Shown: positions 13,477-47,565 of the stretch, one piece after another
Layout: each line of letters begins with the position of its first letter
Numbering within the stretch: position 1 is the first letter of the stretch
From: Anthoceros angustus
Taxonomy: Eukaryota > Plantae > Anthocerotophyta
DNA: 64,000 nt
NCBI GenBank assembly: GCA_010909165.1
Contig: VJWM01000025.1
Coordinates: forward strand, 2,542,001-2,606,000
Direction of reading: 5' to 3'
The notes under the pieces: model-generated
The model's database searches: none
The model's input: only the letters and a program-made list of their open reading frames with translations
What the model was told of the DNA's origin: nothing
Program-made: the position numbers and the translations under genes

Positions 13477-13690
13477 ATGGAGCATAACATTAAAGTTAGT
13501 CTCAATGAGCTAATTAAGCTCAACAAAAAGAAGGCAAGAAGCGGCGGCAGTGCCATGCATAAAGTAGTTGGCGCTCGATAAGCCAAGTAAGCTCAACAAA
13601 AAGAGGGCAAGAAGCAAAGGTGATGATCATGACTAAGCAACTGTTGACTGTCTAAATGATCTAATCAAGCTTAATAAAGAGGGGTGCCAA
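13477..13690 (+). pseudogene. Diverged copy of the ALY-UBM repeat gene (3 degenerate units)
   Basis: MEHNIKVSLNELIKLNKKKARSGGSAMHKVVG then broken units; upstream leader homologous to those at 16412 and 33452. Confidence 0.8.
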
Positions 13691-16501: not shown

Positions 16502-16890
16502 ATGGAGCATGATGTAAATATTAGTCTTGATGAGCTAATTAAGCTCAACAAAAAGAAGGCAAGAAGCTGCGGCGGTGACATGCGTAAAGTAGTTGGTGCC
16601 AACCTTGATGAACTAAGGTCGGTAAAGGAAGGCAAGTGGTGGCTACAATGACCATGGAGCAGCTAGTGCCAACATCGATGAACTAATTAAGTTGAACAAA
16701 AGGAAGGCAGGAGCTGGCTCCGCTCACCATGGAGCAGCAAGTGCCAACTTCGATGAACTATTGAAGTTGAATAAAAAGAAGGCAGGAGGTGGCTACGTTG
16801 ACCATGGAACAGCTAGTGCCAACCTTGATGAAGTAATTAAGCTCAACAAAAAGAAGGCTGGAGGTGCCTACGGTGACCATGGAGCAACTA
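16502..16890 (+). CDS. ALY-UBM repeat ORF copy (5 units, one frameshift), truncated by retroelement sequence
   Basis: MEHDVNISLDELIKLNKKK...(ANxDELIKLNKKKAGGGYxDHGxAS)n. Confidence 0.75.
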
Positions 16891-16994
16891 GTGTTGCAAC
16901 TAGTTTAGGGTCTGCGCCTTTTCAACTTTGACCAACAAAGTTTAGGGTCAACACCTAGGTTGACCCTTTTCAACTAGTTTAGGGTCTGCGCACG

Positions 16995-18763: not shown

Positions 18764-19213
18764 GTTGGCGAGGACGCCAACAAATGAGAAGGGGAGTATG
18801 TGGAAGACCACATATACACTAACCCTCTCTGAAGTGTCGGGATGAACGATTTTTTTTGTTTTGGGAGTGTTTGTATAGCAAAGTGCTTTGAGAATCGCCT
18901 GGGTAAGGTCTTTTATACGAGAATGGTCCTTGGCCCTTGGGATAATAATTTTTTTTTTTGAACCTTAGGTTTTCGAATTTTGATAGGTAGGTCGGAGATA
19001 GAGTCCTTGGGTTTTGGTGATTTTAGAAATAAGAAAGTGTCTATATATGTTAGGGGTGCCTACACCGCCACAGCGCAGCCGGGAGGTAGTGCCCACCACG
19101 GTGGTCAAGAACGGACGCACTGTGGGGAGTTTACAACCCTAGTGGCGAGCGGGCGCCGATGCTGAGCGCAATCGAGACGACACACCCAAAGACCGCGAGG
19201 TCGCAATTTCCGT

Positions 19214-21092: not shown

Positions 21093-21996
21093 GAACCTCA
21101 GTCAAGAGCGACAGTGCTACGGGCCCTGGATGAGGATGCTCATGTCCTCGGCCGTCGCATGGTGAGCGGTGCTCACTCTAAATGTGTATGTGGTTGTTGG
21201 GACAGAGGGGCGTAAACTATTGGTCGCACATCTTGACCGCCACGGTGCTACGCTGGTTCTTCCGAACGGGAGCGGGGCCTACCCCAAGTGGTGATCGAGG
21301 AAATGAGCGGAGGCAGGCGTGGAGGGAGGAGCACACGGTGGCTGTCGGCGATGAGGAGGCGGAATAACGGGCATAGGGCCTATCGACGCATGGAAGACGC
21401 CAAGAAACCGCAGTGCAGTGCGAGGTGGAGGTTTTGGGGAGAATCGCCGGATCGAGGCGCAGGTGAGAGCGAGAGCGACGGAACCCCACCGCAGGGCTAG
21501 GCAAAGAATCATGACGCGCACCGATTTTAGGAGAGCGACATCATAGGCCGAGGCTTTTTGGGGTAGGGGATAGGATGTTTTGAGGACCCGTGGAGCTGTA
21601 GTTACCTGAATTGGTAGGAGCGCTCGTGGTAGTGGGCCATATTTTCTAGACACCTTTGGTAGGAGTGGTGGAAATCCATACCGAATGTATAAGAGACCCT
21701 TGAGAGTCTCTCAATGCATACAATTTCGTGTGAACTTCCGTGTTGAAGCTATGCGCGAGGTTGGTTGGAGGCGATCGGCATCAAACTCGTTCGATGCACC
21801 GCCTTCTCGTCACAAGAAGGCCGGAAGATCCTCGGATGGTCGAGGCGGAGTGGCCAAGCTCCTGACGGGGTAGCCGGGCGCTACGAAAAAGAGGTAGGAA
21901 TTGCAGCGGAAGGTTGAGGCGGAGGCGGCGGATCGCCAAAGCCGGGTTTTCTTTCGATCCTCTTTCCCAAGCTACGCCACGTGTTTTATTCCATGA

Positions 21997-22114
21997 GAGG
22001 GTCTGTGGCCCAAGGAGGGGTCTGTGGCCCAAGGAGGGGTCTGTGTGGCCCAAGGAGGGGTCTGTGGTGGCCCAAGGAGGGGTCTGTGGTGGCCCAAGGA
22101 GGGGTCTGTGGCCC
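21997..22114. repeat. 19-22-bp minisatellite, 6 copies (gaggggtctgt(gt/ggt)ggcccaag)
   Basis: Directly visible. Confidence 0.95.
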
Positions 22115-22534
22115 GTGAGGCGAGGGAGAGTTCATTAGGAAGGAAGGTCCCGAAGATTGAGTCTTGTGTGAGGATTGTGAGTGTGTGTGTGGGGAAAATC
22201 GGAAATGCGTAGGGGGAGTGGAAGTGTGCGGTGGAATCGCAGAAATTCCTAGAAGTGAAGTGAGGTGTATATAGGTGTTTGTATGTCCATAGCCCCCAAG
22301 GTCTGCGCCAGAGAAGCCGGTGACAAATAGACCCCGCGACAGCGCTCTGGGGGACCCGCCATGGTTGAACCGCCACGCGGTGAATCTACCACTGGTGGGT
22401 TTGGGTAGGGTAGCTGGATAAGGTGGGGTAGTGAGCGACGGGGTAGGTCTAGAATCCACAGATTCAGAACACTTTGACACAAAACCATTCCCTTGGGATC
22501 GAATCCTAGGACTATAACGACATAGAGGGTAAAT

Positions 22535-25500
22535 GTGGCCTCTTTGCGTCTTCGGATGCAAAAAAACCCATCCCACAACAGCACTCCAGCGGAATCACGC
22601 CACCCTCCTGTACAGAACACAGTCGGTGAGCCAATCGGAAGTGAAGCGAATCGGACAAACACCTTGCGAAGGATGGAGGAAAGGACAGCCAGTGTCGAAC
22701 ATACCTACGACGAATTGCGCTCATCCTTGTCTCGACAAGACCAACAGCTGGCTAGGGTAGAGCAGGCTGTCGATCGGATCAAGTCCGGTGGGGAGGGCTG
22801 GCCACGGAGAGGTACTGAGGTGTGCTCCAGACGCTGGAGCAACCAACACCCCCAGGCGCTCACCAGTTCCCACCCTCGGACGCTGAGGTGACCAGACCCG
22901 TGCCCACGGTGGACGGGACACACCTCTCCACCCATGTGGATGGAAGACTATCAGGAGCAACCCACCCTGCCACGGGAAGGGAAGAAGGACGGAGGTACAC
23001 CACTGTACCTTGTGCCGAGAAGGAATCCCACCTAGAGGATGGGGGGCTGAGGAAGAAACTCATCGTAGAACTCCAACCTGGCGAGGAAGAGAACAAAGAC
23101 ATCAAAGCAATGGTGAGGTGTCTGCAGATGATGAGATATGAGCATTGGGAGCGCCAACGAGGTCGCTCGAGTGGAGAAGCTCAAGTGGGAGAAGAATACC
23201 CGTTCAAACCGAAGCCCCAGCTCGACAAGGAGTTACACCAAAAAATCAAGACCACAACGTTCGACGGAAGTGCCAAAGATGCTCAAAGTGTGCATGAGTG
23301 GTTGGACAAACTCGACAAGTACCTTGCAGCCTCCCACAAAGACGATTTGCAGAAGATCCAGTTCTGCGTGATGTCGCTTGAAGGATATGCCTACCGTTGG
23401 TGGCGCCAGAGAGAAAAACAGGTGGACCTCGGCATGGAACCACCCGTGTACTCCTGGCCTGTCCTCAAACAGCTCTTCTTGGAACAGTTCCTACCAGTGA
23501 ATCATCGCAGAGACTTGTATCAACAATTCCGAAAGATATTCCAACAAGGTAGTGTACAAGAGTATTGTGCTAAGTTTCTCCAACTCACACTTGACATGCC
23601 CAGGCTGGATGAGGAGCAAAAGATCGAGAAATTCATCGACGGACTGAAATTCGAAATGAGAGCGGATGTGAACCAAACGAACCCAGCAACTTTGGTCGAA
23701 GCAATGCGAGCAGCCATCAATTACGGTACGAACAAGTACAAACACTTCTCTTCCGCAGGTCCCTCTAAGCCTAAGTGGAACAAGACAGCTAACGCGTCAG
23801 ACAAGAAACCAACTTTCAAAATACTGACGGAGGAGGAGAAGAAGGAATACAGTGAGAAGAGGAAATGTTTCACTTGCATGGCACAAGACCATGGTTCAAA
23901 GAACGCCTTTCCGCAAGGACTTCATCAATCGGTTGAGAGAAACCGGAAGACCACCGAGCAACCCAAACCCTCCCAAGAGCGGACATGCCATCAACACAAC
24001 CGAGGTCGACCATGTCATAGCCGCAGCGATCTCGTGGAAGTCAAATCTCCAAGAGGGTTACAATGTGCCCATCAAACTAGAGGTTGGTCTAGAAGGCGCC
24101 CGAGCCACCCCTAGACTCTGGTGCCAGTCATCATTATGTGTCTAGATCCGCTGAAAAGGTTGGCTGATCCGTACCTCGGACATGTGTCCACATGGTAGTG
24201 ATGGTGACATGAAACCGGCAAGGAAGAGTGGTGATGCACTAATCACCTTCCTGTGGTTTTGAAATCTTCAAGTGACGTAATGCCGTCCTTGTGTCATGAC
24301 ATCATCATTGGTAAGCTCGGTCCAAGCATACCCACACATTAGACATAAAGGTTGTCTAACGTAGTGAGTCTTACAAAGGGGGATAAGACATACACCATGC
24401 AAGGTGAACAGTATACCCCGACAAGCTTGTTTGCGATGTCTGCCAGCCGCCTCTGGCGAGTTCATGTCTAGCTAAGCGAAAAAGTCTTACCCTAGAAGGA
24501 ACCCCGAGTCCAGTGCGAAGCCAAGGCTCATGAGGAACTCCTACCACCCACCATGAAGTCATCACAGGAGTTCCGTGATGTGTTCACCGAACCGCAGAAC
24601 TCCCCTAGGCGTCACATCGACCATGCCATAGAGCTCCTGGTCATAAACCCATCAAGATCCACCACACCGTACCATCGAAAACGAGGAAATAAAAAACAAG
24701 TAGACGAACTCCTACGGAAAGGGTTTGTCGCCCTTTGTCCCCTTGAGGGCCCTTCCTTCTTGTTGGCAAACCGGATGGTGGTTGGCGGCTATGCATCGAC
24801 TATCGAGGACTCAACCGCCACGAAATGTCTACCGATGCCGAGGATCGATGAGATCCTGGACCAACTTCACGGTGCAAAGTGGTTTACCAAGATTGATCGA
24901 GATCCGGCTTCCACGGATCGGATCAAGGAAGGGATGAGTCAAAACGACCTTCCGCACAAGACATGGCCACTTGAGTTCGTGGTCATGCCGTTTGGCGACC
25001 AACGCACAACATTCCAATGTCTCATGCAGACATCTTACGACCATTGTTGGGGCACGCGTCAGTATTCCTCCACGACATCCTCATATACACACGACCTAGA
25101 GACACATTACACCTTGGTCGAAGGTACTTGAGCTGCGTGCAAATAAGTTATTGGCCAAAAGAAGTAAGTGTGTCTTCATGAGGCGAGTGTGAATACCGGG
25201 CCACATCATTAGTGCAGCGGTATCCGGGTAGATCCCAAGGTCAAAGCCGTGGTGGTGGCCCCTACCTCGTGATATCACACAACTACGTGGGTTCTCGGCA
25301 TGGCCGGCTTTACCGCTTCATCCAAAGTTTAGCAAGATAGCTTCACAGCGGATGCCCTCAGGCACTCAACCGCAAACCCTTACAACTGGGGCCAGCGGCC
25401 GTCCATGCATTTGAACAGCTCAAGCAAGCCCTTAGTTCGCTCCGTCTTTGGCGGTGGCGGCCCCAGGCCCCATACACCACACACACGGCGCGCCAGTTTT

Positions 25501-27625
25501 GCTATGGGTGCGATCACAACAGGGTCGAGCTATTGCCTACGAATCCAGGAAGTTGCAAGGGGCACAATTGAATTATGTTGTACATGACAAAGAGATGTTG
25601 GCGATCACCCACGCTCTCAAGGTGTGGCGGCATTACCTCTTAGGCGAGTGGTGTGTCACATGCACCACCACCCTTGCAACATTTCTTCTCACAACCCAAC
25701 CTCAACTCCAGACAGCGCAGATGGGCCGAATACCTGGCGGATTTCGACCTCGAGATCAAGTATGTTACTGGGACTTCTAACGTGGTCGCAGATGCCTTGA
25801 GCAGGAGAGCCTGCACACTCATGAAAACACAGTCCCAAACGGTGCAGTTAGTCAGGGATGGATTACCTCACGACCCAGAGTTGTGGCAGTTGTATCAAAG
25901 TCTCCTCGCAGATGCAGCAGCAGGTATTTCCACAGCACTTACCCAACTCTATTCCCTCAAGGATGCCTGTGTTTACCGTAAGGGCCGGTTGGTCATCCCC
26001 TCCCAGCTCACTGCTGTCAAACAGGCCATCCTCCATGATCTGCATGACTCCTCAATCTCCGGGCACTTGGGTATTGACAAAACCTATGCCAAGGTCCGGG
26101 AGCATTTCCACTGGGAAGGCATGCGCTCCGATTGCATCGAGTGGGTGCGCTCTTGTCAGTCCTGCCAACAAGCCAAACCTAGCCATCAGAAATACCCAGG
26201 TCTACTCCAACCCCTCCAAATCCCCAGTGGCTGTTTCCGGTCAATAGCCATGGACTTCATTACACACCTACCTCGTACCCACTCCGGTAAGGACAGCATC
26301 TGGGTGGTGACAGATAGGTTTTCCAAGGTCTGCCACTTCATTCCTGTCACCTCGACCATCACTGCACCCAAACTAGCCACCCTTTTTGTCCGTGAAATCT
26401 TCCAATTACACGGAACACCAGAGGACATTGTGTCGGACAGGGACACGAAATTCACCTCCGGGTTTTGGCGGAACTTCATGGACACACTGGGCATCAAACA
26501 TAACATGTCTTCAGCCTATCACCCCAGGCGGACGGCGACAGAAGCGAGAATCGTGTTAGAAGACATGCTTCGCCATTTCACACATGAGAAGGCAAAGTGG
26601 GAGGAACTCCTTCCCTTGTTGGAGTATGCGTACAATTCCTCGAAGCACGCAGCCACAGGGGTTACTCCCTTCAAACTCCTGTATGGTGAGACACCCCCAC
26701 CTCCAGGCTTATGGCCCAACAGTCAAGACAAGTGGCGGCGCCAAATCGCCGAGGACATTTGCACGAGGTCAAGATGGCTCGACACAAACTCCAAGCAGCA
26801 CAAGACCGGACGCATCACAGCAATCAAGCGCGTCAACTACTCCGTTGGCTTGTTTGGCTCGAGTCAAGCCCCATGTATCCCGCCATGATTCGAACGCAAG
26901 CTCACCTACCGCTGCGGTGGCCTTTCCGGGTGTTGAAACGCGTCAACAAGGTCGCGTGCCGACAGCTTGCCGTGGCGCGCCTCGAACATTCCATGTGTCC
27001 CTGTTGAAACCCGTGATCCACCGTCGAACTTCTCCCATCGACACGGTGAGTCATTAACCCTCTCACCCCTTCCAGACTCCCATTTCCTCTCGGAGGCCAC
27101 GATCTTCCCTCCAACCCCTCCGTGGTATCACCACTTCCCACCAACCGACACGCATCCTCCAGTCGAGGCCAAGCCGCCGACACATGTGACTTCCGGTTGC
27201 ATGGGAGGGCGAACCCGATTCAGCAGCAACATGGGAACCCGAGGATTTCTCACCCGTGCGGCAGATTCGGATGGCCAGGAGGCCCGGCAAGTGGGGAGAA
27301 TGAAACGTGATGACGGGCCACTCAAGTCATCCGCCGAGGAACCAAGCTACCACGAAGCAGTGGCGGGGAACCCTACGAAACACTCATGGTTTTTAGCAAA
27401 TACCCAGCTGATACGAAATAATTAAACATATACTAATTAAATAGATAAATGCCAGTATATAGGATATCCAGATAACTGAAAACTGTTATACCAGTAGAAT
27501 CCCAAGAAGTAGGCGGGCAGGTTCAGCCTTCTTGGCACTGCCTACACACATGTATTTATAGCGAATCCGAACATGAAGAGAACATCCATTTTCCTGAAGC
27601 TGGAACTCAGAGCTGCCCCGTAACA
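22535..27625 (+). mobile_element. Ty3/Gypsy chromovirus 2 (gag-PR-RT-RH-INT-chromo + 3' LTR; 5' LTR not found)
   Basis: Gag 22822-~23900 homologous to element 1; DSGASHHYVS ~24115; RT 24550-25330; [13 protein letters not shown]; integrase HLGIDKT..CQSCQ, IAMDFI, IVSDRD; chromodomain VAWEGEPDSAATWEP ~27200; PPT gtggggagaa; many 1-bp indels. Confidence 0.9.
27301..27625 (+). repeat. 3' LTR of chromovirus 2
   Basis: TGAAAC...GTAACA right after the PPT; the following ttacatagctggag matches the empty site at ~35322. Confidence 0.8.
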
Positions 27626-28105
27626 TTACATAGCTGGAGTTCCACCCCTATACTGATCTGGTTTCTCTATATAGTTATATTTTAATATATATTTTAAAAT
27701 ATTCTACAAATCACTTGATAGCTTTGACCCTTGTCTCAAGGAATCTTCTAAATGCATCTCAATCCAAACAACGTGTCCAAATTAGATATAAGTTAATATA
27801 TACCGTTAGCTTTAGATTCTTACCCTTGTCACGTGGTTGTATATGTACGTCCAAAAATAGAGTGGGTCCTAGATTTCACCATAGTGTACAATTTTCTTGA
27901 TCATTTTTAGATTCGGCAAGGGAGCGTTAAGATTTTTAGTGGCTGAAGAATTGATTAGTGGTTAGGAAGAAGATAGGAAATCATATCCCTACACTAGAGT
28001 TAGATTGATTTTTTGTTATAGCAAAAAAGAGTTAGATTAGTAGGGAGGAGGTTATATTTATAATAAGAAGAAGTTAAAGAGTTAGATTAATAAAGAGAGG
28101 TTATC

Positions 28106-28420
28106 TTGATACAAGAAGAAGTTAAAGATTTCATGTTGTTTTCCAAGCAATGTTATATATTTGAGGTTTTACATACCAAGTGCTCGGTGATGTCAATGAA
28201 TCATGGGAAGGGAGGAGCGCACTTGGGTACATTGATGCATGATAACATTGAAAGTGTGGATTTTCAATTTCCTCCGGATGGAAAGCTTGAGAAACGTTTA
28301 GAAGATGGTCTGGGAAATGGGCACCATTTAAAGATTGTCACATTGTCTATCTTAAAAGACATGGAAAATTGTGAGAAGTTTCGTGTAGAATATTTATATG
28401 AGATAAGGTGTGAAGAGTAG
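28106..28420 (+). CDS. Divergent eIF5A C-terminal (OB-fold)-like ORF, copy 1
   Basis: EVLHTK...LMHDNIESVDFQFPPDGKLEKRLEDGLGNGHHLKIVTLSIL..C aligns without gaps over 70 aa to plant eIF5A DVPHVN...LTDSGGTKDDLKLPTDDGLTAQMRLGFDEGKDIVVSVMSSM..C (about 11 identities by eye); no hypusine domain. Confidence 0.5.
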   Translation: MIQEEVKDFMLFSKQCYIFEVLHTKCSVMSMNHGKGGAHLGTLMHDNIESVDFQFPPDGKLEKRLEDGLGNGHHLKIVTLSILKDMENCEKFRVEYLYEIRCEE

Positions 28421-29308
28421 TTTGTAACTTTTGATACCCCAAATTTTGGGGTAAGTTTTGTTTTGACATGAAACAAAAGCTTGGGATTTTCCCTAAAAAG
28501 AAGGGGTTTATGGTCTTGCGATCCTTAAAATAGCGACAACATTATGCTATCACTGTTTACAAAAACAACTCGAGATTCAAGGAAACTTTCTTTAGACAAT
28601 TATTGGACATTAAAACTAGTGATTCAAGAAACTTTCACAAGACAATCACTAGACCTAAAACTCGAGGTCCAAGGAAACTTTCACAAGAGGATTACTATAT
28701 ATATAGTCTTCACGATATGAGTTCATACATACGTCGTAGTCTTTAGCATAGGAGACTTTCACAAGACCATTACTAAAGTATTATTGACATATTTCATCCG
28801 CAAGAATATAGTGCATATAATTTTCTTTTGCCAACTTTGCAAGAATTGCTAGCTCGCCTTGCGAAGCGGCGACGGTAGCTCGATCTTGAACATTAGGTCC
28901 GAGAGACGGTAGGAAATGACAGTGTGGCATTCAAGCAAGTTCGATATGTGTGTTGTGGTTCTTTACTTGAGCAATTCAAATACAACTGGGCCACTCGTCC
29001 ATCTTGTGGCAAGCAGAAGAGGGTTTCTTTCGCGCTCATGATCAAGAAGAGTGGGAGCGTGAATTGAATTCGCAGACAGTAGGAGTCTTGAAGCTGTGAA
29101 GTCTAAAGCACAGCTGCAAGAGCTACAATTGCGATCTGCAAACTTGAAGTGCAGAGTTTGTGGGCGAGCAAAGACGGGTCGAAATCTCTCTGCAATTCTA
29201 AGTTGACAGCAAGATTGTCAAGTCGCAACAAATTGGCCACCAAGTTGCGACGTGAGTGGGCACGATCATGCCAAGAGCTGGCCGATCAGGCACCTGTTTG
29301 TCTTGATA

Positions 29309-29592
29309 TGTTTTCCAAGCAATGTTATATATTTGAGGTTTTACATACCAAGTGCTCGGTGATGTCAATGAATCATGGGAAGGGAGGAGCGCACTTGGGT
29401 ACATTGATGCATGATAACATTGAAAGTGTGGATTTTCAATTTCCTCCGGATGGAAAGCTTGAGAAACGTTTAGAAGATGGTCTGGGAAATGGGCACCATT
29501 TAAAGATTGTCACATTGTCTATCTTAAAAGACATGGAAAATTGTGAGAAGTTTCGTGTAGAATATTTATATGAGATAAGGTGTGAAGAGTAG
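29309..29592 (+). CDS. eIF5A-C-like ORF, copy 2, fused in frame to an unrelated upstream segment (ORF from 29149)
   Basis: Same peptide as copy 1 from FSKQCY onward. Confidence 0.45.
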
Positions 29593-30235
29593 TTTGTAAC
29601 TTTTGATACCCCAAATTTTGGGGTAAGTTTTGTTTTGACATGAAACAAAAGCTTGGGATTTTCCCTAAAAAGAAGGGGTTTATGGTCTTGCGATCCTTAA
29701 AATAGCGTCTACACGACATGCCTTTCTCACCACTTGCACTCATGCAGGTCCTCCGTCTCCTTGGCTTTGACGTTATGCCTGCTATTTGTCCATTTAAGTA
29801 TCGAAGGCCTGGGCAGGTAGAGATATCCAAGTCACAGACATTGGAGTGAGGGAGGCAAATCCATCGAGCCCGAGGGTAGAAAGAGCATGTCCTCGATGAG
29901 AAAACTTGGTTGGGTGCTGAAAAGAAATCAAGATCGACATCCTTTCACCGCATTCAAATCCAAAGATCGCCCGCTTTGGGAATCGCCTTCCCGTCCTTCG
30001 TCGAACACAAATTATTCCAAGCGGTTGCGAACAACACCAAAAACTTTCATCAATTCGCGCCACGCTTTGGACATGTTACAGTGCGTGGGGACTGCAATTG
30101 GTTGTTCCTTTTACGCACTGGAAGTTTGGCTTGTTGGGTTTCGAGTTTTATGTGAAGGGCACTTGTTCTCACGTAAGGTGGAAGTCTAGCTTGTTGGGAC
30201 TCTAGAAGTCAAAAGAAGCATGCAATTATCAAGCG

Positions 30236-30800
30236 ACTAGTGCCAACCTTGGTAACTTAATTAAGCTCAACAAAAGAATGCAAGAAGCGGTGGGATGACC
30301 ATGAAGGATCTCGTGCCAACTTTGATGAACTAATTAAGCTCAACAACAAGAAGGCATGAGGCGGCTAGGGTGACCATGAAGCACAAGTGCCAACCTTGAT
30401 AAACTAATTAAGTTCAACAAAAGAAGGCTGAGGTGGTCAGGTGACCATGGAGCGCATCGCCAACTTCTATGAACTAATTAAGCCCCACAAAAGAAGGTAG
30501 GAGGTGGCTATGGTGACCATGGAACACCTAGTGCGAACCTTTGATACCACAAATTTTGGGGTAATATTTTTTTTAAAACGAAAAAATGCCTTGGGAGGCT
30601 GCTGCAACAAGAAGGCATGAGGCGGCTTAGGGTGACCATGAAGCGGCAAGTGCCAACCTTGATAAACTAATTAAGTTCAACAAAAGAAGGTGAGGTGGTC
30701 ATGGTGACCATGGAGCGCATCGCCAACTTCTATGAACCAATTAAGCCCCACAAAAGAAGGTAGGAGGGCTATGGTGACCATGGAACACCTAGTGCGAACC
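30236..30800 (+). repeat. Headless UBM 75-bp arrays (two blocks, ~7 units, degenerate)
   Basis: Repeated gccaac..gatgaactaattaagctcaacaaaaagaaggc...ggtgaccatgga units. Confidence 0.85.
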
Positions 30801-31312
30801 TTTGATACCACAAATTTTGGGGTAATATTTTTTTAAAACGAAAAAATGCCTTGGGAGTTCTCTAAAACGGTGTCTAGTCCTGCGATCCTTAAAATAGCGA
30901 CAACATTATGCTATCAGCTTCGCATAAAAAACAACTCGAGATTCAAGGAAACTTTCTTTAGACAATTATTGGACATTAAAACTAGTGATTCAAGGAAACT
31001 TTCACAAGACAATCACTAGACCTAAAACTCGAGGTCCAAGGAAACTTTCACAAGAGGATTACTATATATATACTGGCCCTTAGTATCGGCGTATTCCTAA
31101 GATATCCTATTGGTGATATGGGGAAATATCCTAAGAATACACTATAATGCAAGCAATGCTAAAGCATACTTAAGCTTATCCACTTAGCTATTGTATCCTA
31201 CACTATAATTAGATTGATTTTTGTTATAGCAAAAAGAGTTAGATTAGTAGGGAGGAGGTTATATTTATAATAAGAAGAAGTTAAAGAGTTAGATTAATAA
31301 AGAGAGGTTATC

Positions 31313-31620
31313 TTGATACAAGAAGAAGTTAAAGATTTCATGTTGTTTTCCAAGCAATGTTATATATTTGAGGTTTTACATACCAAGTGCTCGGTGATGT
31401 CAATGAATCATGGGAAGGAGGCGCACTTGGGTACATTGATGCATGATAACATTGAAAGTGTGGATTTTCAATTTCCTCGGATGGAAAGCTTGAGAAACGC
31501 TTAGAAGATGGTCCGGAAATGGGCACCATTTAAAGATTGTCACATTGTCTATCTTAAAAGACATGGAAAATTGTGAGAAGTTTCGTAGAATATTTATATG
31601 AGATAAGGTGTGAAGAGTAG
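31313..31620 (+). pseudogene. eIF5A-C-like ORF, copy 3 (indels)
   Basis: Same sequence with small deletions. Confidence 0.45.
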
Positions 31621-32725
31621 TTTGTAACTTTTGATACCCCAAATTTTGGGGTAAGTTTTATTTTGACATGAAACAAAAGCTTGGGATTTTCCTAAAAGAA
31701 GGGGTTTATGGTCTTGCGATCCTTAAAATAGCGTCTACGACATGCCAATTGGAGTTTCACCTCCATCCATCCTTTTGGCAAGTACTCCTATGCCTTCAAA
31801 CTCACACTAGGGAGTTCAATGCACCCTCGAATTGGGTTGAGAGAAGAAAACCAAACCAAACCACACCAAGCTCATTCCTTTTTTCCCACATTGAAAAATT
31901 AATCCCTACCTACCATCTTCTCAAGGCCTTCTCCTTGAGAGCGTTTTTCCTACATAATAAAAATATTAGATCACTCTAGCCATGGAAAATTGTGAGAAGT
32001 TTCGTAGAATATTTATATGAGATAAGGTGTGAAGAGTAGTTTGTAACTTTTGATACCCCAAATTTTGGGGTAAGTTTTATTTTGACATGAAACAAAAGCT
32101 TGGGATTTTCCTAAAAGAAGGGGTTTATGGTCTTGCGATCCTTAAAATAGCGTCTACACGACATGCCTTTCTCACCACTTGCACTCATGCAGGTCCTCCG
32201 TCTCCTTGGCTTTGACGTTATGCCTGCTATTTGTCCATTTAAGTATCGACCGGGCGGGCCCATTCCCGGGCCGCGGGTAGAGATATCCAAGTCACAGCAC
32301 ATTGGAGTGAGCAGGAGGCAAATCCATCGAGCCCTGAGGTAGAAAGAGCATGTCCCTGATGAGAAAACTTGGTTGGGTGCTGAAAAGAAATCAAGATCTG
32401 ACATCCTTTCACCGCATTCAAATCCAGCATCGTCCAGTTTTGGGAATCAGCTTCCCGTCCTTCTTCGTCGAACACAAATTATTCCAAGCGGTTGCGAACA
32501 ACACCAAAAACTTTCATCAATTGCGTCACGCGCTTTCTGGACATGTTACAGGTACGTGTGGGGACCTGCAATTGGTTGTTCCTTTTTACAGTACCGTGGA
32601 AGTTTGGCTTGTTGGGTTTCGAGTTTTATGTGAAGGCTGTTACTGTTCTCAAGTACGTAAGGTGGAAGTCTAGCTTGTTGGGACTCTAGAAGTCAAAAAG
32701 AAGCAGCTGCAATTATCAAGCAGCT

Positions 32726-33040
32726 AGTGCCAGCCAACCTTGGTAACTTAATTAAGCTCAACAAAAAGAATGCAAGAAGCGCGGCGGGGATGACCATGAA
32801 GGATCTCGTGCCAACTTTGATGAACTAATTAAGCTCAACAACAAGAAGGCATGAGGCGGCTAGGGTGACCATGAAGCAGCAAGTGCCAACCTTGATAAAC
32901 TAATTAAGTTCAACAAAAAGAAGGCAGGAGGTGGCTGCGGTGACCATGGAGCAGCTACTGCCAACTTCTATGAACTAATTAAGCCCCACAAAAAGAAGGT
33001 AGGAGGTGGCTATGGTGACCATGGAACACCTAGTGCGAAC
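32726..33040 (+). repeat. Headless UBM 75-bp array (4 units, stops)
   Basis: Same unit as above. Confidence 0.85.
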
Positions 33041-33541
33041 CTTTTGATACCACAAATTTGGGGTAATATTTTTTTTTAAAAACGAAAAAAATGCCTTGGG
33101 AGTTCTCTCTAAAACGAAGGGGTGTCTAGTCCTGCGATCCTTAAAATAGCGACAACATTATGCTATCACTGTTTCGCACAAAAAAAACAACTCGAGATTC
33201 AAGGAAACTTTCTTTAGACAATTATTGGACATTAAAACTAGTGATTCAAGGAAACTTTCACAAGACAATCACTAGACCTAAAACTCGAGGTCCAAGGAAA
33301 CTTTCACAAGAGGATTACTATATATATAGTCTTCACGATATGAGTTCATACATACGTACGTAGTCTTTAGCATAGGAGACTTTCACAAGACCATTACTAA
33401 AGTATTATTGACATATTTCATCTGCAAGAATATAGTGCATATAATTTTCTTTTGCCAACTTTGCAAGAATTGTTTGATTTGCGGACTTTGCAGGAAGTTT
33501 TCACTTCCATCTACTTTTTCTCCACAAAGTCGAAGGACCCT

Positions 33542-33940
33542 ATGGAGCATAATGTAAATATTAGTCTTGATGAGCTAATTAACCTCAACAAAAAGAAGGC
33601 AAGAAGCTGCGGCGGTGACATGCGTAAAGTAGTTGGTGCCAACCTTGATGAACTAATAAGGCTGAACAAAAGGAAGGCAAGTGGTGGCTACAATGACCAT
33701 GGAGCAGCTAGTGCCAACATCGATGAACTAATTAAGTTGAACAAAAGGAAGGCAGGAGCTGGCTCCGCTCACCATGGAGCGCAAGTGCCAACCTTGATAA
33801 ACTAATTAAGTTCAACAAAAAGAAGGCAGGAGGTGGCTGCGGTGACCATGGAGCAGCTACTGCCAACTTCTATGAACTAATTAAGCCCCACAAAAAGAAG
33901 GTAGGAGGTGGCTATGGTGACCATGGAACACCTAGTGCGA
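33542..33940 (+). pseudogene. ALY-UBM repeat ORF copy (5 units, chimeric with the headless type)
   Basis: MEHNVNISLDELINLNKKK... open for 3 units, then switches to the headless-array tail. Confidence 0.75.
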
Positions 33941-34435
33941 ACCTTTTGATACCACAAATTTGGGGTAATATTTTTTTAAAAGCGAAAAAATGCCTTGGGA
34001 GTTCTCTCTAAAAGCGAAGGTGTCTAGTCCTGCGATCCTTAAAATAGCGACAACATTATGCTATCAACTGCTTTCGCAAAAAAACAACTCGAGATTCAAG
34101 GAAACTTTCTTTAGACAATTATTGGACATTAAAACTAGTGATTCAAGGAAACTTTCACAAGACAATCACTAGACCTAAAACTCGAGGTCCAAGGAAACTT
34201 TCACAAGAGGATTACTATATATATAGTCTTCACGATATGAGTTCATACATACGTACGTAGTCTTTAGCATAGGAGACTTTCACAAGACCATTACTAAAGT
34301 ATTATTGACATATTTCATCCGCAAGAATATAGTGCATATAATTTTCTTTTGCCAACTTTGCAAGAATTGTTTGATTTATGACTTTGCGGAAGTTTCACTT
34401 CCATCTACTTTTTCTCCACAAAGTCGAAGGACCCT

Positions 34436-35109
34436 ATGGAGCATAATGTAAATATTAGTCTTGATGAGCTAATTAACCTCAACAAAAAGAAGGCAAGAAG
34501 CTGCGGCGGTGACATGCGTAAAGTAGTTGGTGCCAACCTTGATGAACTAATAAGGCTGAACAAAAGGAAGGCAAGTGGTGGCTACAATGACCATGGAGCA
34601 GCTAGTGCCAACATCGATGAACTAATTAAGTTGAACAAAAAGGCGGGGAGGCGGCTCCGCTCACCATGGAGCGGAAGTGCCAACCCGATGAACTATTGAA
34701 GTTGAATAAAAAGAAGGCAGGAGGTGGCTACGTTGACCATGGAACAGCTAGTGCCAACCTTGACGAAGTAATTAAGCTCAACAAAAAGAAGGCTGGAGGC
34801 GCCTACGGTGACCATGGAGCAACTAGTGCCAACTCCGATGAACTAATTAAGCTCAACAAAAAGAAGGCAGGAGGTGGCTACGGTGACCACGAAACAGCTA
34901 GTGTCAACCTCGACGAACAAATTAAGCTCAACAAAAAGAGGGCAGGAGGCGACTACGATGACCATGGAGTAGCTAGTGCCGAGAAAAATAAATTCTTGAG
35001 GCGAAGTTACAAAGGGCTTGCCGCAATACAAGCTAATCGTGTAGCGCGACGAAGCACGCCCTACTTCACTTCCAAGTTTTTCAACTCCAACTCAAAAGTA
35101 TATTTGTAA
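34436..35109 (+). CDS. Most complete poly-UBM gene: ALY/REF exon-1-derived protein with 7 tandem UAP56-binding-motif-like repeats (~225 aa if a 4-nt deficit near 34640-34685 is corrected)
   Basis: N-terminus ISLDELINLNKKK resembles ALY/Yra1 MSLDDIIKLN; C-terminus ANRVARRSTPYFTSK resembles plant ALY NR..RSAPY.SAK; 75-bp period; no RRM or C-UBM follows. Confidence 0.7.
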
Positions 35110-35956: not shown

Positions 35957-37111
35957 CGACATGCCTTTCTCACCACTTGCACTCATGTTGGTCTTCCGTC
36001 TCCTTGGCTTTGACATTATGGGCGTTGAGGGTGACTTTAAGTACTGAGCTATGCTCTCTTCTCTAATGCAGGACTCTAATGCCAACTCGACTTGAGTCTT
36101 TAACTGGTCACTTTGATTAACATTGTGACCCTCTAACTTAGGGCAAACTGATATCAAGTTACCATAGTATTCTTTCTTGAGCCCTTTCTACTCTTGCCTA
36201 TTATCTTCCACCTTGACCTGCATTCTGTTCCTTGAAGCTTATGCAAGATGAGGTGGTCAAGTATTGGATCTAATCTGTTCGTAATCACAAGAGGTTTGGT
36301 CACCCAAGAGATTAAGACCCTATTACACAACAGGTCTGGTCACCTATGGGATTAAGACCCTAACAGGTCTGGTCACCTATGGGATTAAGACCCTATTACA
36401 CGTTTCCGTTATTGAACCCTCAAGTTCATATAAACAAGTCCGATGACGTGACTCCACTTCCATCCTCACATAGTCTAATTGGTGTACCACCTCGCGTAAA
36501 GGTATGACACTACAGATGTCCATACTTTGCAGAGTCTGACTCTATAGTACACCAACTCACATGATAGTATGACAGTACTTTATAGGATATACCAACTCGC
36601 ATGATAGTGTGACAGTACTTTGTAGGATATGCAGTCTGTCCGTCCGTCACACTGCGTGATACTTATCCTTATGTGAATAAAGCTATACCAACCAATTTGA
36701 ATTAGGATCTCGAAACTTGAATACAACACGTACTACAACCGATCCGCAAATCAAATATATCCGCGGCTAGCCGTGAGAATATGCTCCTCTGACTATATGT
36801 CCTACACACTTTATTTCCAACCGCCCACTCACCTCGAGTTGTCAGGTCCCAATAAGTGACTAAGTAGATTATTTAGTAGCTGAAGCCTAAAAGTTAAATA
36901 AATACATAACAAACATAGGGTTTAGATTAGCTTGGCGTAATTGAGGAGGCCAGTTCATACCGGAAGGACGGCGCCTGCCTGGGGCAGGTCACGGGCGAGC
37001 AGCTCCCCTCTCCGGCTATAGAAGCGAGCTCCTTCTGGTGGAGGAAGAAGAAGCAGTCGCGTTCTCCGTATCGGCAACCTGGCTAGCGTCAGAGTCGCCC
37101 TCGGTATCAGC

Positions 37112-38287
37112 ATGGCCTCGCCTTGCTCTCTTGTGCATCGCATCGCATTTCGCAGCTCTCGTTTTGCATCTTGCATTGCTTTGCTCGCCAATGTTGCATC
37201 GTTGCTGATCGACGTCCTCTGTACCGTCCTCTCGTTCCCGGTTGTTGCAGGGGCAGGAGGCGGCATCATCGGCCTCGCCATGGCCAGCCCGGCTCCTGGA
37301 GCCGAAGAAACTCCCGCGCCGGCCGCGGAGAGCGCGCAGACTGCTGCGCGCGGCGCAAGCGGGAGGTACCGGAGGACCAGCGAGCAGGACCTGGACGTCC
37401 CCTTCATGAGCACAAACAAAGCCCCGAGCTGCGTGCAGCTGGGATGCACCTACACGGTAGCCGAAGGGAGGCTGGTGCACTGCCCGAGCTGCCCTCAGGG
37501 GCTCCTGGAGCGGGGAGCGAGCTGGACGTGGCGGGAAGTGAAGGCGCAAATGGAGCTTCCCCGGCGGCCGAGCACCTGTCTCCCCGTAGAGGAATCCCAG
37601 CTCCACATGCGGCTCTTCACCATCCCGCCTCCGTTCAACCGGCTGCACTACCTGGAGGAGGAGGACAATCAGGACATGGCGCAGTGCGCGCAGCTGCTGC
37701 GGCTCATCCAGCTCGGAAAGCACTACCTGAACGGGATTTTCGTGCCGGGGGGGGCTGCGGGGCACGACCGGGCCATGCCGCAATCCTTCCGCTTCTGCGC
37801 CAACTTCGATCACCTGGGGCACGGCAACGCGGCCACCAACTTCCCGGACCCCGGAGAGGACGCGCTCGGTGACGACTACGACGTGTACCCGGATGCTTGG
37901 ATCAATGGGAATGTGATTGTGGACTACTCCGAGTTCGCGCACGAGCTGGAGGATGGGAGTGCCTTGGCGCTGGTTACCATCGCTTCTACTCCCGGGAAGA
38001 TCAACGACCTGGAGCTCGCCACCATGGGAGGTAAGGACGTTGTGTACATGGTGTCCGCTCTGCGTTTCCATTACCAGCCGCCGCCGCCGCGCGCCCAGGC
38101 TGTCGGCTGGTTCTACACCACCGGGAGGCGCTACAACAACCACTTCATGGACCCCGTCTTCGACGACATCCTCTACTACATGCGGGGCAACTACGACGAT
38201 GACTACGACGACGCGCTGCGCGACTCCTGGAGAGAGACGCTCTGGTGGCGCGTTCTTACTCGCTGCACGACTCTCTATCCTTACTGA
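37112..38287 (+). CDS. Intronless GC-rich orphan protein (start may be 37280, MASPAPGA); function unknown
   Basis: 391-codon ORF with strong C/G third-position bias; upstream TATA-like ctatag at ~37016; CxxxxC..CPSC cluster. Confidence 0.65.
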   Translation: MASPCSLVHRIAFRSSRFASCIALLANVASLLIDVLCTVLSFPVVAGAGGGIIGLAMASPAPGAEETPAPAAESAQTAARGASGRYRRTSEQDLDVPFMSTNKAPSCVQLGCTYTVAEGRLVHCPSCPQGLLERGASWTWREVKAQMELPRRPSTCLPVEESQLHMRLFTIPPPFNRLHYLEEEDNQDMAQCAQLLRLIQLGKHYLNGIFVPGGAAGHDRAMPQSFRFCANFDHLGHGNAATNFPDPGEDALGDDYDVYPDAWINGNVIVDYSEFAHELEDGSALALVTIASTPGKINDLELATMGGKDVVYMVSALRFHYQPPPPRAQAVGWFYTTGRRYNNHFMDPVFDDILYYMRGNYDDDYDDALRDSWRETLWWRVLTRCTTLYPY

Positions 38288-38558
38288 TAGAGAGAGGAAG
38301 GACTTTCTGTTGCTTTGCTCTTTTACCCTATCCTTAGAGATGAAGGAAGGACTTCTCATGCTTTGCTTTCTTTACTCGTTAAGATGCAATATGCTTACTG
38401 CGGCTTTTACATAGATAGCTATCTACTTGCCTGCTAGCTGCTACTGCTAGCACTGCTACTACTGCGAAGGACTAGTTTACATTCCAGAGAAGCCCTGTCT
38501 ACACGGCAGGCATCTTGCCTGTGTCTGTGAGTGTTTTTGAGTATTGTGTCCTGCTTGC

Positions 38559-42198: not shown

Positions 42199-43517
42199 AT
42201 GGAGGAGCCGGAGCAGGCCGGTGTGCCGCTGGAGGAGGAGGACCACCAGAATGGATTCTTCGCATGTTATTTGCTTTGTTCTGAGAATCCTCGCAGCAAG
42301 GGTCGCACCTACATCGGGTATGCTGGGAGCTGCGGGGAATGGTAATTCGCTTACCTTTTTGACCGTAATTCTGACAGCAGGTGTCTGTTGTGGAACAGAT
42401 TCACAGTAAATCCGCGCAGGCGTCTGAGGCAGCACAACGGTCAGGTCAAACAGGGAGCATGGCTGACAAAGAAGAACCGGCCCTGGAACATGATTCTTTG
42501 CGTGCACGGTTTCCACACACAGGTGGATGCATTACAGGTGAGTGTCTCGACTTGGACCATGTTGTAGTCGTGAGTGTCTGAGCACACTCTCGATGTTGAT
42601 CCACCGCTCTGTTCTGTTGTGTTCTGGTGCACAGTTTGAATGGGCATGGCAGCATCCCCTCAAGTCTCTGGCGGTGAGGGAGGCCGCTGCCAAGATACAG
42701 ATGCGGGGAATCCGTGGCAAGGTCCTTCTGCTTTTCACCATGCTCACATGTCGGAAATGGCAGAGGTAGGCAATGTTGCAGGCTTTCTTCTCGTTTTGGT
42801 GCTTGCATAAGTCCGTGTTTAAGGCTGAGCAAGCTTCCTGTGCCTTGGCACAAGTGCAGCATGCACCTGAACGTGCAGTTCTTCTCCACCAAGTACGCGC
42901 ATCTCCGAAACGGCTGCCCTCCTCTCGCACGCCAGATGCGAGTTTCTGTTGCCCCCATGGATGATCTCCCCTGTTACGGCAGTGCAGCACCGGAGTCAGA
43001 TGAAATGGAGGTCTCAGCAGAGGAGGAGGAGGAGGAGGAGGAGGATGCAGCCAAGGAGCAAAGCCCTGCTCCGGAGTCACCACCGACACCGACAGTCCAG
43101 GCAGCAGAGCCCTTGGGCATGTCCTCCCCGGAAATGATGCCATCGGAGCAATCATCTTTGGTGCCCTGCGGTACCCGGACTCTTCAATGCAGCAGCCCTT
43201 GGTTGAGGAGACATTGCTCTGCTCCAGATTCACCAGCAGCAGACCCCGAAACCTTACCCTGCCAGAAGCTGCCTCTGCAGGAATCAAACTGGATGGCTCC
43301 CACCGACAGGATCCATTGCAACAACTCATGGCAACCCAGGCAACGAAGGAAAGTGCGCAAGGAGCCAGCATTTTTCTGCCCTCCGAGTAGTTCTGAGGTG
43401 ATTGTCATTGATGCTTCCCCTTTGCCAGCCCGCAGTGACAGGGAGGTGATCTACATCGAGGCCTCTCCCCTTCCCGTGTGTAGGGAAGTAATAGTCATCG
43501 AGGACTCACCTTTGTAG
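42199..43517 (+). CDS. SLX1: SLX1-like GIY-YIG structure-specific endonuclease, 4 exons
   Basis: [16 protein letters not shown]|[35 protein letters not shown]|FEWAWQHP. Confidence 0.93.
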
Positions 43518-44230: not shown

Positions 44231-44995
44231 CCCATGCAAAAGTTCAGTGTCTTTAAACACACAAACTCGGAGCCTATGGTCAACTTTCTTACCCAAAGAG
44301 TTCAACACAAAAACTCGGAGCCCATGGTCAACTTTCTCAATTAAAAGTTCCTTTTAAAAGTTCCTTGAAGCCCATGGTCCATCTTTCTCACCCATGCATT
44401 TGAAAAGTCCTTGAAGCCCATAGTCAATCACAAAAACAAAGTTCCTTGAAGCCCATGGCAACCACAAAGGGGCATATAAAAGGTCCTTGAAACCCATGGG
44501 CAACCACAAAAACTCAAAGTTTAGTATCTTTAAACACAAAAACTCGAAGCCCTTGCTCAACTTTCTCAACCCATGGTCAACTTTGTCACCGAGTCATTTA
44601 AAAGTTCCTTGAAACCCATGGTCATTTTTCTCACCGAGACATTTAAAAGGTCCTTGAAGCCCATGGTCAACTTTTTCACCAAGTAATTTAAAAGTTCCTT
44701 GAAACCCATGATCAAATTTTTTACTTAGTCACTTGAAAGTTCAGCGTCTTTAAACACAAAAACTCAAAGCCCATGGTCAACTTTTTCACTAAGTTACTTA
44801 AAAGTTCAATGTCTTTAAACACAAAAAAATTGAAGCTCATGGTCAACTTTCTCGCAGAGTGATTTTGAAGCCCATAGTCAACTTTCTCGCAGAGTGATTT
44901 TGAATGCCCATAGTCAACTTTTTCATGAGTCACTTAATAGTTCAGAGTCTTCAAACACAAAAACTCGAGACTCGAAGCCCATGGTCAACTTTCAC
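44231..44995. repeat. Degenerate ~45-70-bp tandem array (core agcccatggtcaactttctc...aaaagttccttga)
   Basis: More than a dozen ccatggtca/ccatagtca cores; resembles a transposon subterminal repeat or small satellite. Confidence 0.85.
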
Positions 44996-45670
44996 GAAAT
45001 CATTCATGCATCATACATCAAACTGGAACCTAAATTAGACTATCATAAAATTAAAACAAGGCCACATAAATAAATTATTAAACAGAAAAATCCTAAAATA
45101 AACTATCATAAAGTTATAACAAGACCACATAAATAAATTATTGCATGAAACAGGCTTAAAGATAAATTATCACAAATGTGTAACAAGACCACATGGTGGG
45201 GGCTAGTCCTCCTGGCATGGTGCCTTCTTTGTTTTCGGGGTGGATGGGTTTTTCCCATCTCTTTGTCATAATAAAGTCTTCTTTTCTCTAACAAGACCAC
45301 AGAAACAAAAACTATTATTGCACACAACAAGAGCAGGTTTGGTTGGGAGACTATGCACTTTGTGAAAGTATAACAAAGAGCTCTTAAGGGTTGTAGCAAG
45401 GCTTAAAAACGATGCTATGGTATAGTGTACCAAGCGCGGACACCGACGGACCTACATTTTTTCCCTTTTTCTTCCGTACGTGTAGAGAAGAAAAATAGCG
45501 AACACTGACAGACCAACATTTTTTGTCCTTTTTCTTCTCTACGGGTAGAGAAGAAAAAGAAAAAGAAATGGCACACCCGAAGATTGTGCAAGGCTGCAAG
45601 CCCAAAGGCCCAGCCGAGCTGGGCCTTTGGGGGCGTACTCATGATTAGGAAAGCGTAGAATGTACTAGGT

Positions 45671-45835
45671 GAGGGGCTTCTCAAATAAGGAGGTGCAGAT
45701 GAAGGCATCCAGGTTGAGGGAAAGTCGAGAGGGGCTTCTCAAATAAGGAGGTGCAGATGGAGGCATCCAGGTTGAGGGAAAGGCGAGAGGGGCTTCTCAA
45801 ATAAGGGGGTGCAGATGAAGGCATCCAGGTTGGGG
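45671..45835. repeat. 58-bp tandem repeat, ~2.8 copies
   Basis: gaggggcttctcaaataagg.ggtgcagatg.aggcatccaggttg at 45671, 45729 and 45787. Confidence 0.92.
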
Positions 45836-46338
45836 GAGAACGTGAACTGAGAGCTGTCGACCAAGACCTAAGCATCCTCATGAGGCTCATACCTTATCTG
45901 GCTCATACAAGTTCTTGCTACAATCTTCGCTGGAAGGTTGGAGGATGGAGTTTGTTCAGTCGTAAGCCCGGACGAGGCTGGAAAGCTCTGAGCATGAGAG
46001 GAAAAGCGGCGATCAGGACAAAATAATTTGGTAGCGGGCAACCGCTCATCGACATGAAGTAGAATAGCCGTGTGAGTGAATGTGTTGGAATTGTTAGCGG
46101 AATGCAGTGAAGGCGGTATTGGGTTTTCTTCGAAAAGAAGCAAGGAGCAAGGAGGAGGGGGAGGGAAATTTGTGAAGACAGATGTATGTATGTAGGCTTG
46201 ACGGGGCTTTACAATTGAGCTTGGGCTTGGGCTTGGGCTTGGGCTTGCCTTGCCTTGCCTGTTGCCCGGCCTTGCCTTGCCTTGCCTCCATCTCAACTCT
46301 TGCTAAAACTCTTTTGGTGTGAGGATGTTGCGGACAGA

Positions 46339-47565
46339 TCATGCATGAAGCACCTGCGAGCTGGATGGGTTGAAATCCGCAAAGAGCTTGGGGGCGTGGA
46401 TGACTTCCCAGTCCACCTCGAAGACGCTTCCTCGGCTGCTGCCGGCATGGGCTGCATCCAGCAGCGTGCGCTTGACATGACCCACCAGGACATGGAGGCT
46501 GAATGCAACCACGAAGAGCTTGCCGTTCATGGAGTTGACAGAAAAGGGGCGGCTCATGGGCGCAGGCAGAGGCGGACCCACAACGTTCTTCCAGGAATCG
46601 CTCTCCTCCTCATAAACCTTGAGCTTGAAATGCTCCTCGTGGTCCGTGATAATGTAGAGATGGCCGTCCAGGACGACGCTGAGGCCGGTCCAGCCTTCCC
46701 GCATTCCCATCGTCATCCCCTCCCACCGGTTGAGCTTGGGATCGTAGACCTGGCCCCGGGGCGGGGAGAGGAAGGGCCAGGACCAGCCCTCCGTGAGATG
46801 CAGCTTCCCCTTGAGCACCGCGGCATCGAAGCGCGCCATGTTGGCCCCCATGTTGGCCACGGGCCGCCACTCGTCCTCCACGGGGTCGTAGACCTCGGCC
46901 GAGCTCAGGCTGCAGTCGGTGCTGTTCCCGCCTGCCGCGTACACCCGCCCCTCGATCGTCCCGCTGGCAAAGAAGGATCTGGGAGTGGACATGGCGGAAA
47001 CGGAGCTCCACCGGTTCCGGCAGAGCTCGTATTTCAGCACGCTGTCCATGGGGCAATCCATGTCCGACCGCATTCCCCCGCACACCAGGAGCACGCCCTG
47101 CTCCGGGACCGAGGCGCACCCGAAGCCCGCCGGGCAAACCCTCTCCGTGCACGGCATGGTCGGGATCACATGCCAGGATTGCATGCGCGGGTCCAGGGCC
47201 TGCCATTGAATCCTCCCCGTGCTCTTGTGGAAGGCGAAGACGAGCAGCCACTGCTCCGCCAGGCCCTGCGCCCGCCGGGCCAGGAAGTACTCCGGCCGGG
47301 ACAGAGCCCAATTCCACGCCCGGCAGACTCCCCTGGCCGCTGCCCGGCATCCCAGCGGCACCCGCAGCAGGCAGCAGAGGGCCAGGTCGTCCGGCAGCCC
47401 TGGTATCAGCGGTTCCGAGGAGCACCCAACATCGGGAGGAGCATCACCAGCGGCAGGGTGTTGCTCCTCTGCTGCTATCATGGAGGCAGGCCTGTCTACC
47501 GCGGAAGGAGTGCTCAGGACAAGGCAGAGGAGGGAAAGAGAGGAGGAAGATGGGAACAGGGACAT
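46339..47565 (-). CDS. F-box/kelch-repeat protein (At1g30090-like); N-terminus uncertain
   Basis: PLIPGLPDDLALCCLLRVP F-box; kelch repeats VCGGMRSDMDCP, RSFFASGTIEGRVYAAGG, TEGWSWPFLSPPRGQVYDP, MREGWTG. Confidence 0.95.
   Translation of the reverse strand: MSLFPSSSSLSLLCLVLSTPSAVDRPASMIAAEEQHPAAGDAPPDVGCSSEPLIPGLPDDLALCCLLRVPLGCRAAARGVCRAWNWALSRPEYFLARRAQGLAEQWLLVFAFHKSTGRIQWQALDPRMQSWHVIPTMPCTERVCPAGFGCASVPEQGVLLVCGGMRSDMDCPMDSVLKYELCRNRWSSVSAMSTPRSFFASGTIEGRVYAAGGNSTDCSLSSAEVYDPVEDEWRPVANMGANMARFDAAVLKGKLHLTEGWSWPFLSPPRGQVYDPKLNRWEGMTMGMREGWTGLSVVLDGHLYIITDHEEHFKLKVYEEESDSWKNVVGPPLPAPMSRPFSVNSMNGKLFVVAFSLHVLVGHVKRTLLDAAHAGSSRGSVFEVDWEVIHAPKLFADFNPSSSQVLHA

Follow-up and report, generated by a model that had tools for sequence, protein, structure and literature searches.

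The window analysed here is a stretch of 64,000 nt from Anthoceros angustus (GCA_010909165.1, contig VJWM01000025.1, positions 2,542,001-2,606,000 of the forward strand), and all coordinates below count from its first base. At 34436-35109 the window holds a tandem repeat locus (Table 1). Tandem Repeats Finder (TRF) reports a period of 75 bp at 34463-34980, with 6.9 copies, 77% matches and a score of 559; the 75-bp, 25-aa in-frame repeat described in an initial annotation of this DNA is thus real. The head and tail placed on either side of it are also present. The ATG at 34436 starts the head, MEHNVNISLDELINLNKKK, and the tail contains RRSTPYFTSK and stops at the TAA at 35107-35109. Seven LDELIKLNKKK-like motifs can be counted, that of the head included, as had been claimed. 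The locus is not, however, the single small ORF of that description: 34436-35109 comprises two ORFs in different frames, one of 87 aa and one of 147 aa. The array is a head-to-tail repeat inside an ORF, its period is a multiple of 3, and it is in that sense a coding minisatellite. The end of the tail is 44 residues past the last unit, and the tail together with its 340-bp 3' flank has a single occurrence within the window.

Table 1. Features of the repeat locus and of the related arrays in the window.
Feature	Position	Strand	Description
Older copy	13477..13680	+	~80% identical; three motif-like units; stops
16.5k copy	16502..16893	+	94.5% identical to 34213-34828; 5-bp deletion and scrambling in unit 2; cut at 16894, then Ty3 pol fragment
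B-type arrays	30218..30857	+	Internal 263-bp duplication; many 1-nt deletions; stops the same as in the 32716 array
B-type array	32716..33043	+	4 units; in-frame TGA/TAG stops; preceded by a different segment with a splice-donor/acceptor-like pair
33.5k sister array	33542..33944	+	From 897-bp tandem duplication; chimera; frameshifted; without tail
47-bp tandem repeat, 2.6 copies	34086..34208		Precedes ORF; TRF
Upstream non-coding segment	34213..34435	+	Common to copies at 16276, 28693 and 33316; 4.5% different from the 16.3k copy
ORF 1	34436..34699	+	87 aa; head and units 2-3; three motif copies; stop made by frameshift
Head motif SLDELINLNKKK	34457..34492	+	This copy's best match to the ALY N-terminal peptide
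Unit 2	34532..34606	+	75 nt, intact
Unit 3	34607..34678	+	72 nt; 2-nt and 1-nt deletions; linker scrambled, frame restored
ORF 2	34666..35109	+	147 aa; units 4-7 and tail
Unit 4	34679..34752	+	74 nt; base missing at 34685/86, a disabling frameshift
Units 5, 6 and 7	34753..34977	+	75 nt each; in frame with tail
Tail	34978..35109	+	Unique; RRSTPYFTSK and stop codon; predicted helix in first 25 residues

Alignment to the 16.5k and 33.5k copies, with codons read directly, was used to locate the lesions in the 34.4k copy. Unit 3 carries a 1-nt deletion, also seen in the 33.5k copy, and a 2-nt deletion found in the 34.4k copy only. Together these scramble nine linker codons, after which the frame returns. 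The missing base in unit 4 leads to a stop at 34697-34699, and the 34.4k copy is one base short of a continuous seven-motif frame of ~223 codons. The difference at 34685/86 is no homopolymer slip and adjoins a cluster of other differences; it could be an assembly error. Splicing or recoding over the frameshift was considered and rejected, as 34640-34700 lies within no GT-AG pair of a length that could be spliced. Among the local copies the 34.4k one has suffered least, with a single base deletion as its disabling lesion.

A frame that is one base from continuity, and a double deletion in unit 3 that restores it, are what one might expect of a working, or very recently working, small disordered protein. 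Such a protein would have three motifs if made from either 87-aa ORF (at 33542 or 34436), and seven if the deletion at 34685/86 is an assembly error; its UAP56-binding helices would titrate or cluster the helicase. The restored frame in unit 3 could be read as selection for frame, and chance alone would give it about 1 time in 3. We consider a working protein to be quite unlikely, and the remaining local copies are among the reasons. The window contains six arrays, the 34.4k array included, with 30 units in total and all on the + strand. There are three units in the array at 13.4k, seven in that at 34.4k, and four or five in the others. Every one of the six carries frameshifts, stops or truncation, at differing places, which argues against a working protein. 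The 30.2k and 32.7k arrays have in-frame stop codons in common. Two ORFs of 87 aa, with three motifs each, are still open.

The 33.5k array points to recombination as the mechanism. Over 248 bp it matches 34393-34640 perfectly (100% identity), and B-type (32.8k-like) sequence follows from ~33785. It is a product of unequal crossing-over between arrays, because sequence identical to the 34.4k copy switches to the B type at ~33785.

Several other features accompany the arrays. A 47-bp repeat (2.6 copies, 81% matches) is found at 28567-28688, 30933-31055, 33189-33311 and 34086-34208. It lies ~230-350 bp 5' of the ORF start in every copy that retains the 5' region, and the occurrence at 28567 has no ORF behind it. 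The segment that precedes the B-type arrays (32223-32715 and 29778-30217) is GC-richer. It ends in a strong donor-like CAG/GTACGT at 32551/52, with an acceptor-like TAG ~138 nt later at 32689; the donor GT is absent from the 30.1k copy. This donor/acceptor-like pair is possibly the remnant of an exon-intron junction in the parent gene. Alignment of 29529-30597 with 31978-33102 has 70 gap positions in 1132 aligned, and many of these are the loss of a single A in A5 runs (AAAAAG to AAAAG). The single-A losses in the 30k copy could be true decay or homopolymer sequencing error.

The surroundings are those of a repeat-rich plant region. The window has a plant-like character and abounds in Ty3/gypsy fragments, with matches to gag, RT, RNase H and integrase, and 100% identical stretches recur in it at spacings of 897 bp, 1172 bp and 3207 bp. 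The identical pairs (28137-28436 and 29309-29608; 33181-33480 and 34078-34377; 28024-28211 and 31231-31418) are 100% identical over 188-300 bp, and the parts next to them are 5-10% different. Such a pattern points to duplication or gene conversion in the very recent past, with assembly artefacts in a hard-to-assemble repeat as another possible source. Recent tandem duplication, together with unequal crossing-over, connects the arrays inside a Ty3-rich block.

The region to the right of the 16.5k copy has a more involved history. This copy adjoins a Ty3 pol midway along its length (RNase H at 17047), which is followed by a second gag at 22822-24114 and an integrase at 25653-26888. The repeat block resumes at 27625, with ~490 bp missing. 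We rejected the idea that a retrotransposon had inserted cleanly into the 16.5k copy, since the right junction resumes at the equivalent of 35321 and not of 34829. The segment 16894-27624 is a complex rearrangement and not a simple insertion. No LTR pair was found in 16500-28200. A search for the ends of a transposon that could have captured the fragment (Pack-MULE, CACTA or Helitron) covered TIRs and LTRs and found none framing the block.

None of ten flanking ORFs has a Pfam domain. Four long ORFs elsewhere in the window, at 37016-38359 (-), 46255-47715 (+), 20139-21092 (+) and 42532-43371 (-), encode 279-486 aa, lie in GC-rich DNA and likewise lack a Pfam match. They are probably compositional, or unclassified transposon sequence, because each is overlapped by ORFs on the opposite strand. 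Short tandem repeats with periods of 35, 45, 58, 63 and 65 nt are clustered within 1.3 kb at 44568-45837.

The many same-strand copies in a repeat-rich block are circumstantial grounds for a function at the RNA level. In this case, clustered relics on one strand would be transcribed and be the source of small RNAs, or of a long non-coding RNA, acting on ALY-family transcripts. There is, however, no inverted repeat of at least 40 nt in 12500-37500, with no inverted copies or long hairpins, and a search of Rfam gave no match. We regard an RNA-level function as extremely improbable.

The divergence among units bears more directly on whether the encoded protein has been under selection. All 30 units were placed in register for an analysis of variability by codon position. 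The mean minor-allele fraction was 0.145 at the first codon position, 0.093 at the second and 0.115 at the third, with no third-position excess. Distinct variants were also counted in ten non-redundant units, with an expectation derived from the observed transition/transversion mix. Synonymous variants in the motif core numbered 6, against 6.0 expected, and those among units as a whole numbered 12, against 13.8 expected. The initial annotation had held that the core of the motif stays conserved while the linkers vary, and had taken this as a hint of constraint on the protein. We found 25 variants in 33 core sites and 30 variants in 42 linker sites at the DNA level, an equal density, which does not bear out the former, and the hint of constraint fails on the counts of synonymous and non-synonymous variants just given.

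Estimates of omega give a similar picture, with some room for constraint in one lineage. The pooled unit sets reject any omega of 0.3 or less (P 0.005 or lower), whereas the six core units of the c34 lineage, taken alone, do not (P 0.12), and omega 1 fits the unit data. Within the 34.4k lineage, Nei-Gojobori dN/dS is ~0.55, a value in which transition bias exaggerates the apparent constraint. Mild constraint (omega ~0.5) is compatible with this lineage, and the estimate counts in favor of a working protein. In contrast, the absence of a synonymous excess counts against it, as does the comparison of the 16.5k and 34.4k copies, in which evolution of the ORF is no slower than that of its upstream flank. 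Divergence is 4.1%, with four indel events, for the ORF and 4.5%, with two indel events, for the 223 bp of upstream non-coding sequence. The copies thus look to diverge neutrally. Neutral divergence between units had been named beforehand as a refuting outcome for the functional reading, and the observed divergence fits it.

Both hallmarks of a pseudogene or relic are found at this locus, namely disabling lesions, which are present in six of six arrays, and neutral divergence. We conclude that the locus is probably a gene relic with a coding minisatellite and not a working gene, and we infer that it lacks a present function. We postulate that a first-exon fragment of the ALY/UIF type became detached from the remainder of its parent gene, and that a 75-bp segment made of the motif and its linker then acted as a coding minisatellite. 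The number of units would have been altered by unequal crossing-over and slippage. By these processes the whole block of ~0.9-2 kb would also have been duplicated several times in the retrotransposon-rich region, and the copies would have drifted neutrally, gathering frameshifts and stops.

Two proposed activities of the encoded protein are not supported by these observations: the frame is broken, the sister copies have decayed and the divergence of the units fits neutrality. One was a multivalent UAP56 binder that serves as a TREX decoy. The other was an export adaptor for the RNA of adjacent transposons, and nothing ties the locus to that RNA. If the locus is a relic, then it is a commonplace case of gene fragments turning into tandem repeats, useful mainly as a marker for a family of ALY-like fragments. 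A relic of this kind would also illustrate how unequal crossing-over multiplies a short linear motif, here from three to seven copies, and so provides raw material for a multivalent binder.

The searches for relatives of the encoded protein were largely empty. A word-index protein search returned nothing for the 147-aa ORF and nothing for the 87-aa ORF even at an E value of 10. An exhaustive phmmer search against 1.84 billion representatives gave six weak matches, all to bacterial repeat proteins with Big_2 (Ig-like), DUF11 or TPR repeats. We rejected these six as relatives, since they are artefacts of matching repeat to repeat. No ALY was among the matches of the exhaustive phmmer, word-index or PDB searches, and neither phmmer against the PDB nor a 25-column profile of the unit recovered a chain of ALYREF, UIF or Yra1. 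Four ORFs looked up exactly were absent from a collection of 15 billion proteins. Scans of metagenomes, with the protein and with an exact 32-nt pattern, were empty. Neither ORF, nor the 1 kb downstream, nor the flanking ORFs contain an RRM, and Pfam gave no match to the C-terminal UAP56-binding motif (the FoP_duplication region). A literature search found no ALY-derived satellite in plants.

Two weak leads point in a common direction. The head matched the Pfam family FYTT (PF07078) with an E value of 0.077 and 12.8 bits, against a cut-off of 21, over profile positions 21-40. This match did not recur in Pfam searches with a trimmed head or with seven other pieces, the paralogous copies included. 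In the Atlas, the 147-aa ORF had no usable match, and the in-frame head (70 aa) gave only leads below 0.9. One of these was a plant cluster with a score of 0.78, 19% of whose members carry Pfam FYTT.

These results can be set beside the known UAP56-binding motifs. The N-terminus of Arabidopsis ALY2 is SGGLDMSLDDIIK (PMC6283158) and that of human ALYREF is ADKMDMSLDDIIK (PMC4661793). In UIF, the UAP56-binding motif is the sole region in common with REF (PMC2828547). We scored the nonamer common to the two ALY peptides at every position of the window in six frames. The head scored 29 in the 16.5k copy and 24 in the 34.4k copy, and the background maximum was 22 in 88,000 positions. When the tail of the background scores is extrapolated, it suggests that a gigabase genome would hold thousands of equally good 9-mer matches; at the scale of a genome or a database the match is thus not significant.

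A rival reading is that the locus has no genic ancestry at all. The array would then be an ordinary minisatellite in a locally amplified non-coding repeat, and its period in multiples of three, its one open frame and its likeness to a UAP56-binding motif would be coincidental. The lack of a significant match to ALY, UIF or anything else is consistent with this, as are the large number of chance matches extrapolated above, the FYTT match, which is sub-threshold and lost with a trimmed query or other copies, and the neutral divergence. So are the invariant blocks GCCAAC and GACCATGG, which are unchanged at all three codon positions. Coincidence accounts less readily for the arrangement of the features. 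The motif lies a few residues past the ATG, as in ALY, and is followed by a basic and then a Gly-rich stretch. A unique tail that holds an R..PY...K-like element closes the array, and two weak and different methods (Pfam and the Atlas) both indicate the UBM-bearing FYTT family. A purely non-coding origin seems rather unlikely to us.

In plant ALY, an R..PY...K element lies before the RRM. The R..PY...K-like tail, the motif soon after the start codon and the basic and Gly-rich continuation seen here presumably fit plant ALY. The proposal that the first exon of an ALY gene had its motif multiplied while the RRM was lost is a fair description in that the RRM is indeed absent; the part of it that names ALY draws on a match of 7-9 residues and on searches that were non-significant. 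On balance an ALY/UIF ancestry for the relic is plausible and somewhat more likely than not, with a likeness that is confined to the level of the motif.

If any copy were translated, the product would be an unusual one. Single-sequence AlphaFold2 gave a mean pLDDT of 54.6, with a helix of 10-12 residues for each motif, disordered linkers of 13 residues and a helix of 25 residues in the tail. The model shows a predicted protein that resembles beads on a string, with no globular fold. A helix on each motif and disorder in the linkers are features in favor of a working protein, whereas the low confidence of the model is not, nor is the fact that no similar predicted protein appeared in the collections searched (the 1.84 billion representatives and the 15-billion exact look-up). 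There is also a precedent in SARNP for multivalent binding of UAP56 by arrays of short motifs (PMC12823420). SARNP has five UCMs, short helicase-binding motifs that are arranged in an array, and for the N-terminal motif of ALYREF, which binds UAP56 at its RecA2 lobe, the affinity is mid-micromolar (PMC12823420).

By analogy with these proteins, a decoy would be mechanistically reasonable. We speculate that the 34.4k copy (if its missing base is an assembly error), or both of the 87-aa ORFs, might encode a plant-lineage-specific disordered protein that consists solely of tandem ALY-type UAP56-binding helices and that, being multivalent, either decoys or clusters the export helicase, and we think this very unlikely. 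To our knowledge, an architecture made only of tandem UAP56-binding helices has been described for no protein. If any copy is expressed, a protein with only UAP56-binding motifs would lend itself naturally to the perturbation of TREX. Its expression would also allow tests of the ideas about multivalency that are emerging from the structures of SARNP and ALYREF.

The relic can be compared with three known systems. The first are the ALY/REF proteins (THOC4, Yra1), which have the core S-L-D-[DE]-[IL]-I-K a few residues past the start codon; the motif is SLDELIK or NLDELIK here and MSLDDIIK in Arabidopsis ALY2 and human ALYREF. As in ALY/REF, basic and Gly-rich residues follow the motif, and a short helix is predicted on it. 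Unlike ALY/REF, the locus has no RRM, C-terminal motif or RGG tracts. It also has seven copies of the motif instead of one, a broken frame and no statistically significant similarity. UIF/FYTTD1 (PF07078) and the plant UIEF are a second point of comparison. Here the head matches the UAP56-binding part of the FYTT profile (positions 21-40), and the near-neighbour plant cluster in the Atlas is partly annotated FYTT. However, the match is below threshold and not reproducible, and the remainder of the FYTT profile is absent. The third system is SARNP/Tho1, to which there is no sequence relation. SARNP uses another motif and another site on UAP56, and it is a conserved, expressed gene. What the two would have in common is the arrangement of short helical helicase-binding motifs joined by flexible linkers, and SARNP/Tho1 would be the nearest functional analogue of this locus if the ORF were translated.
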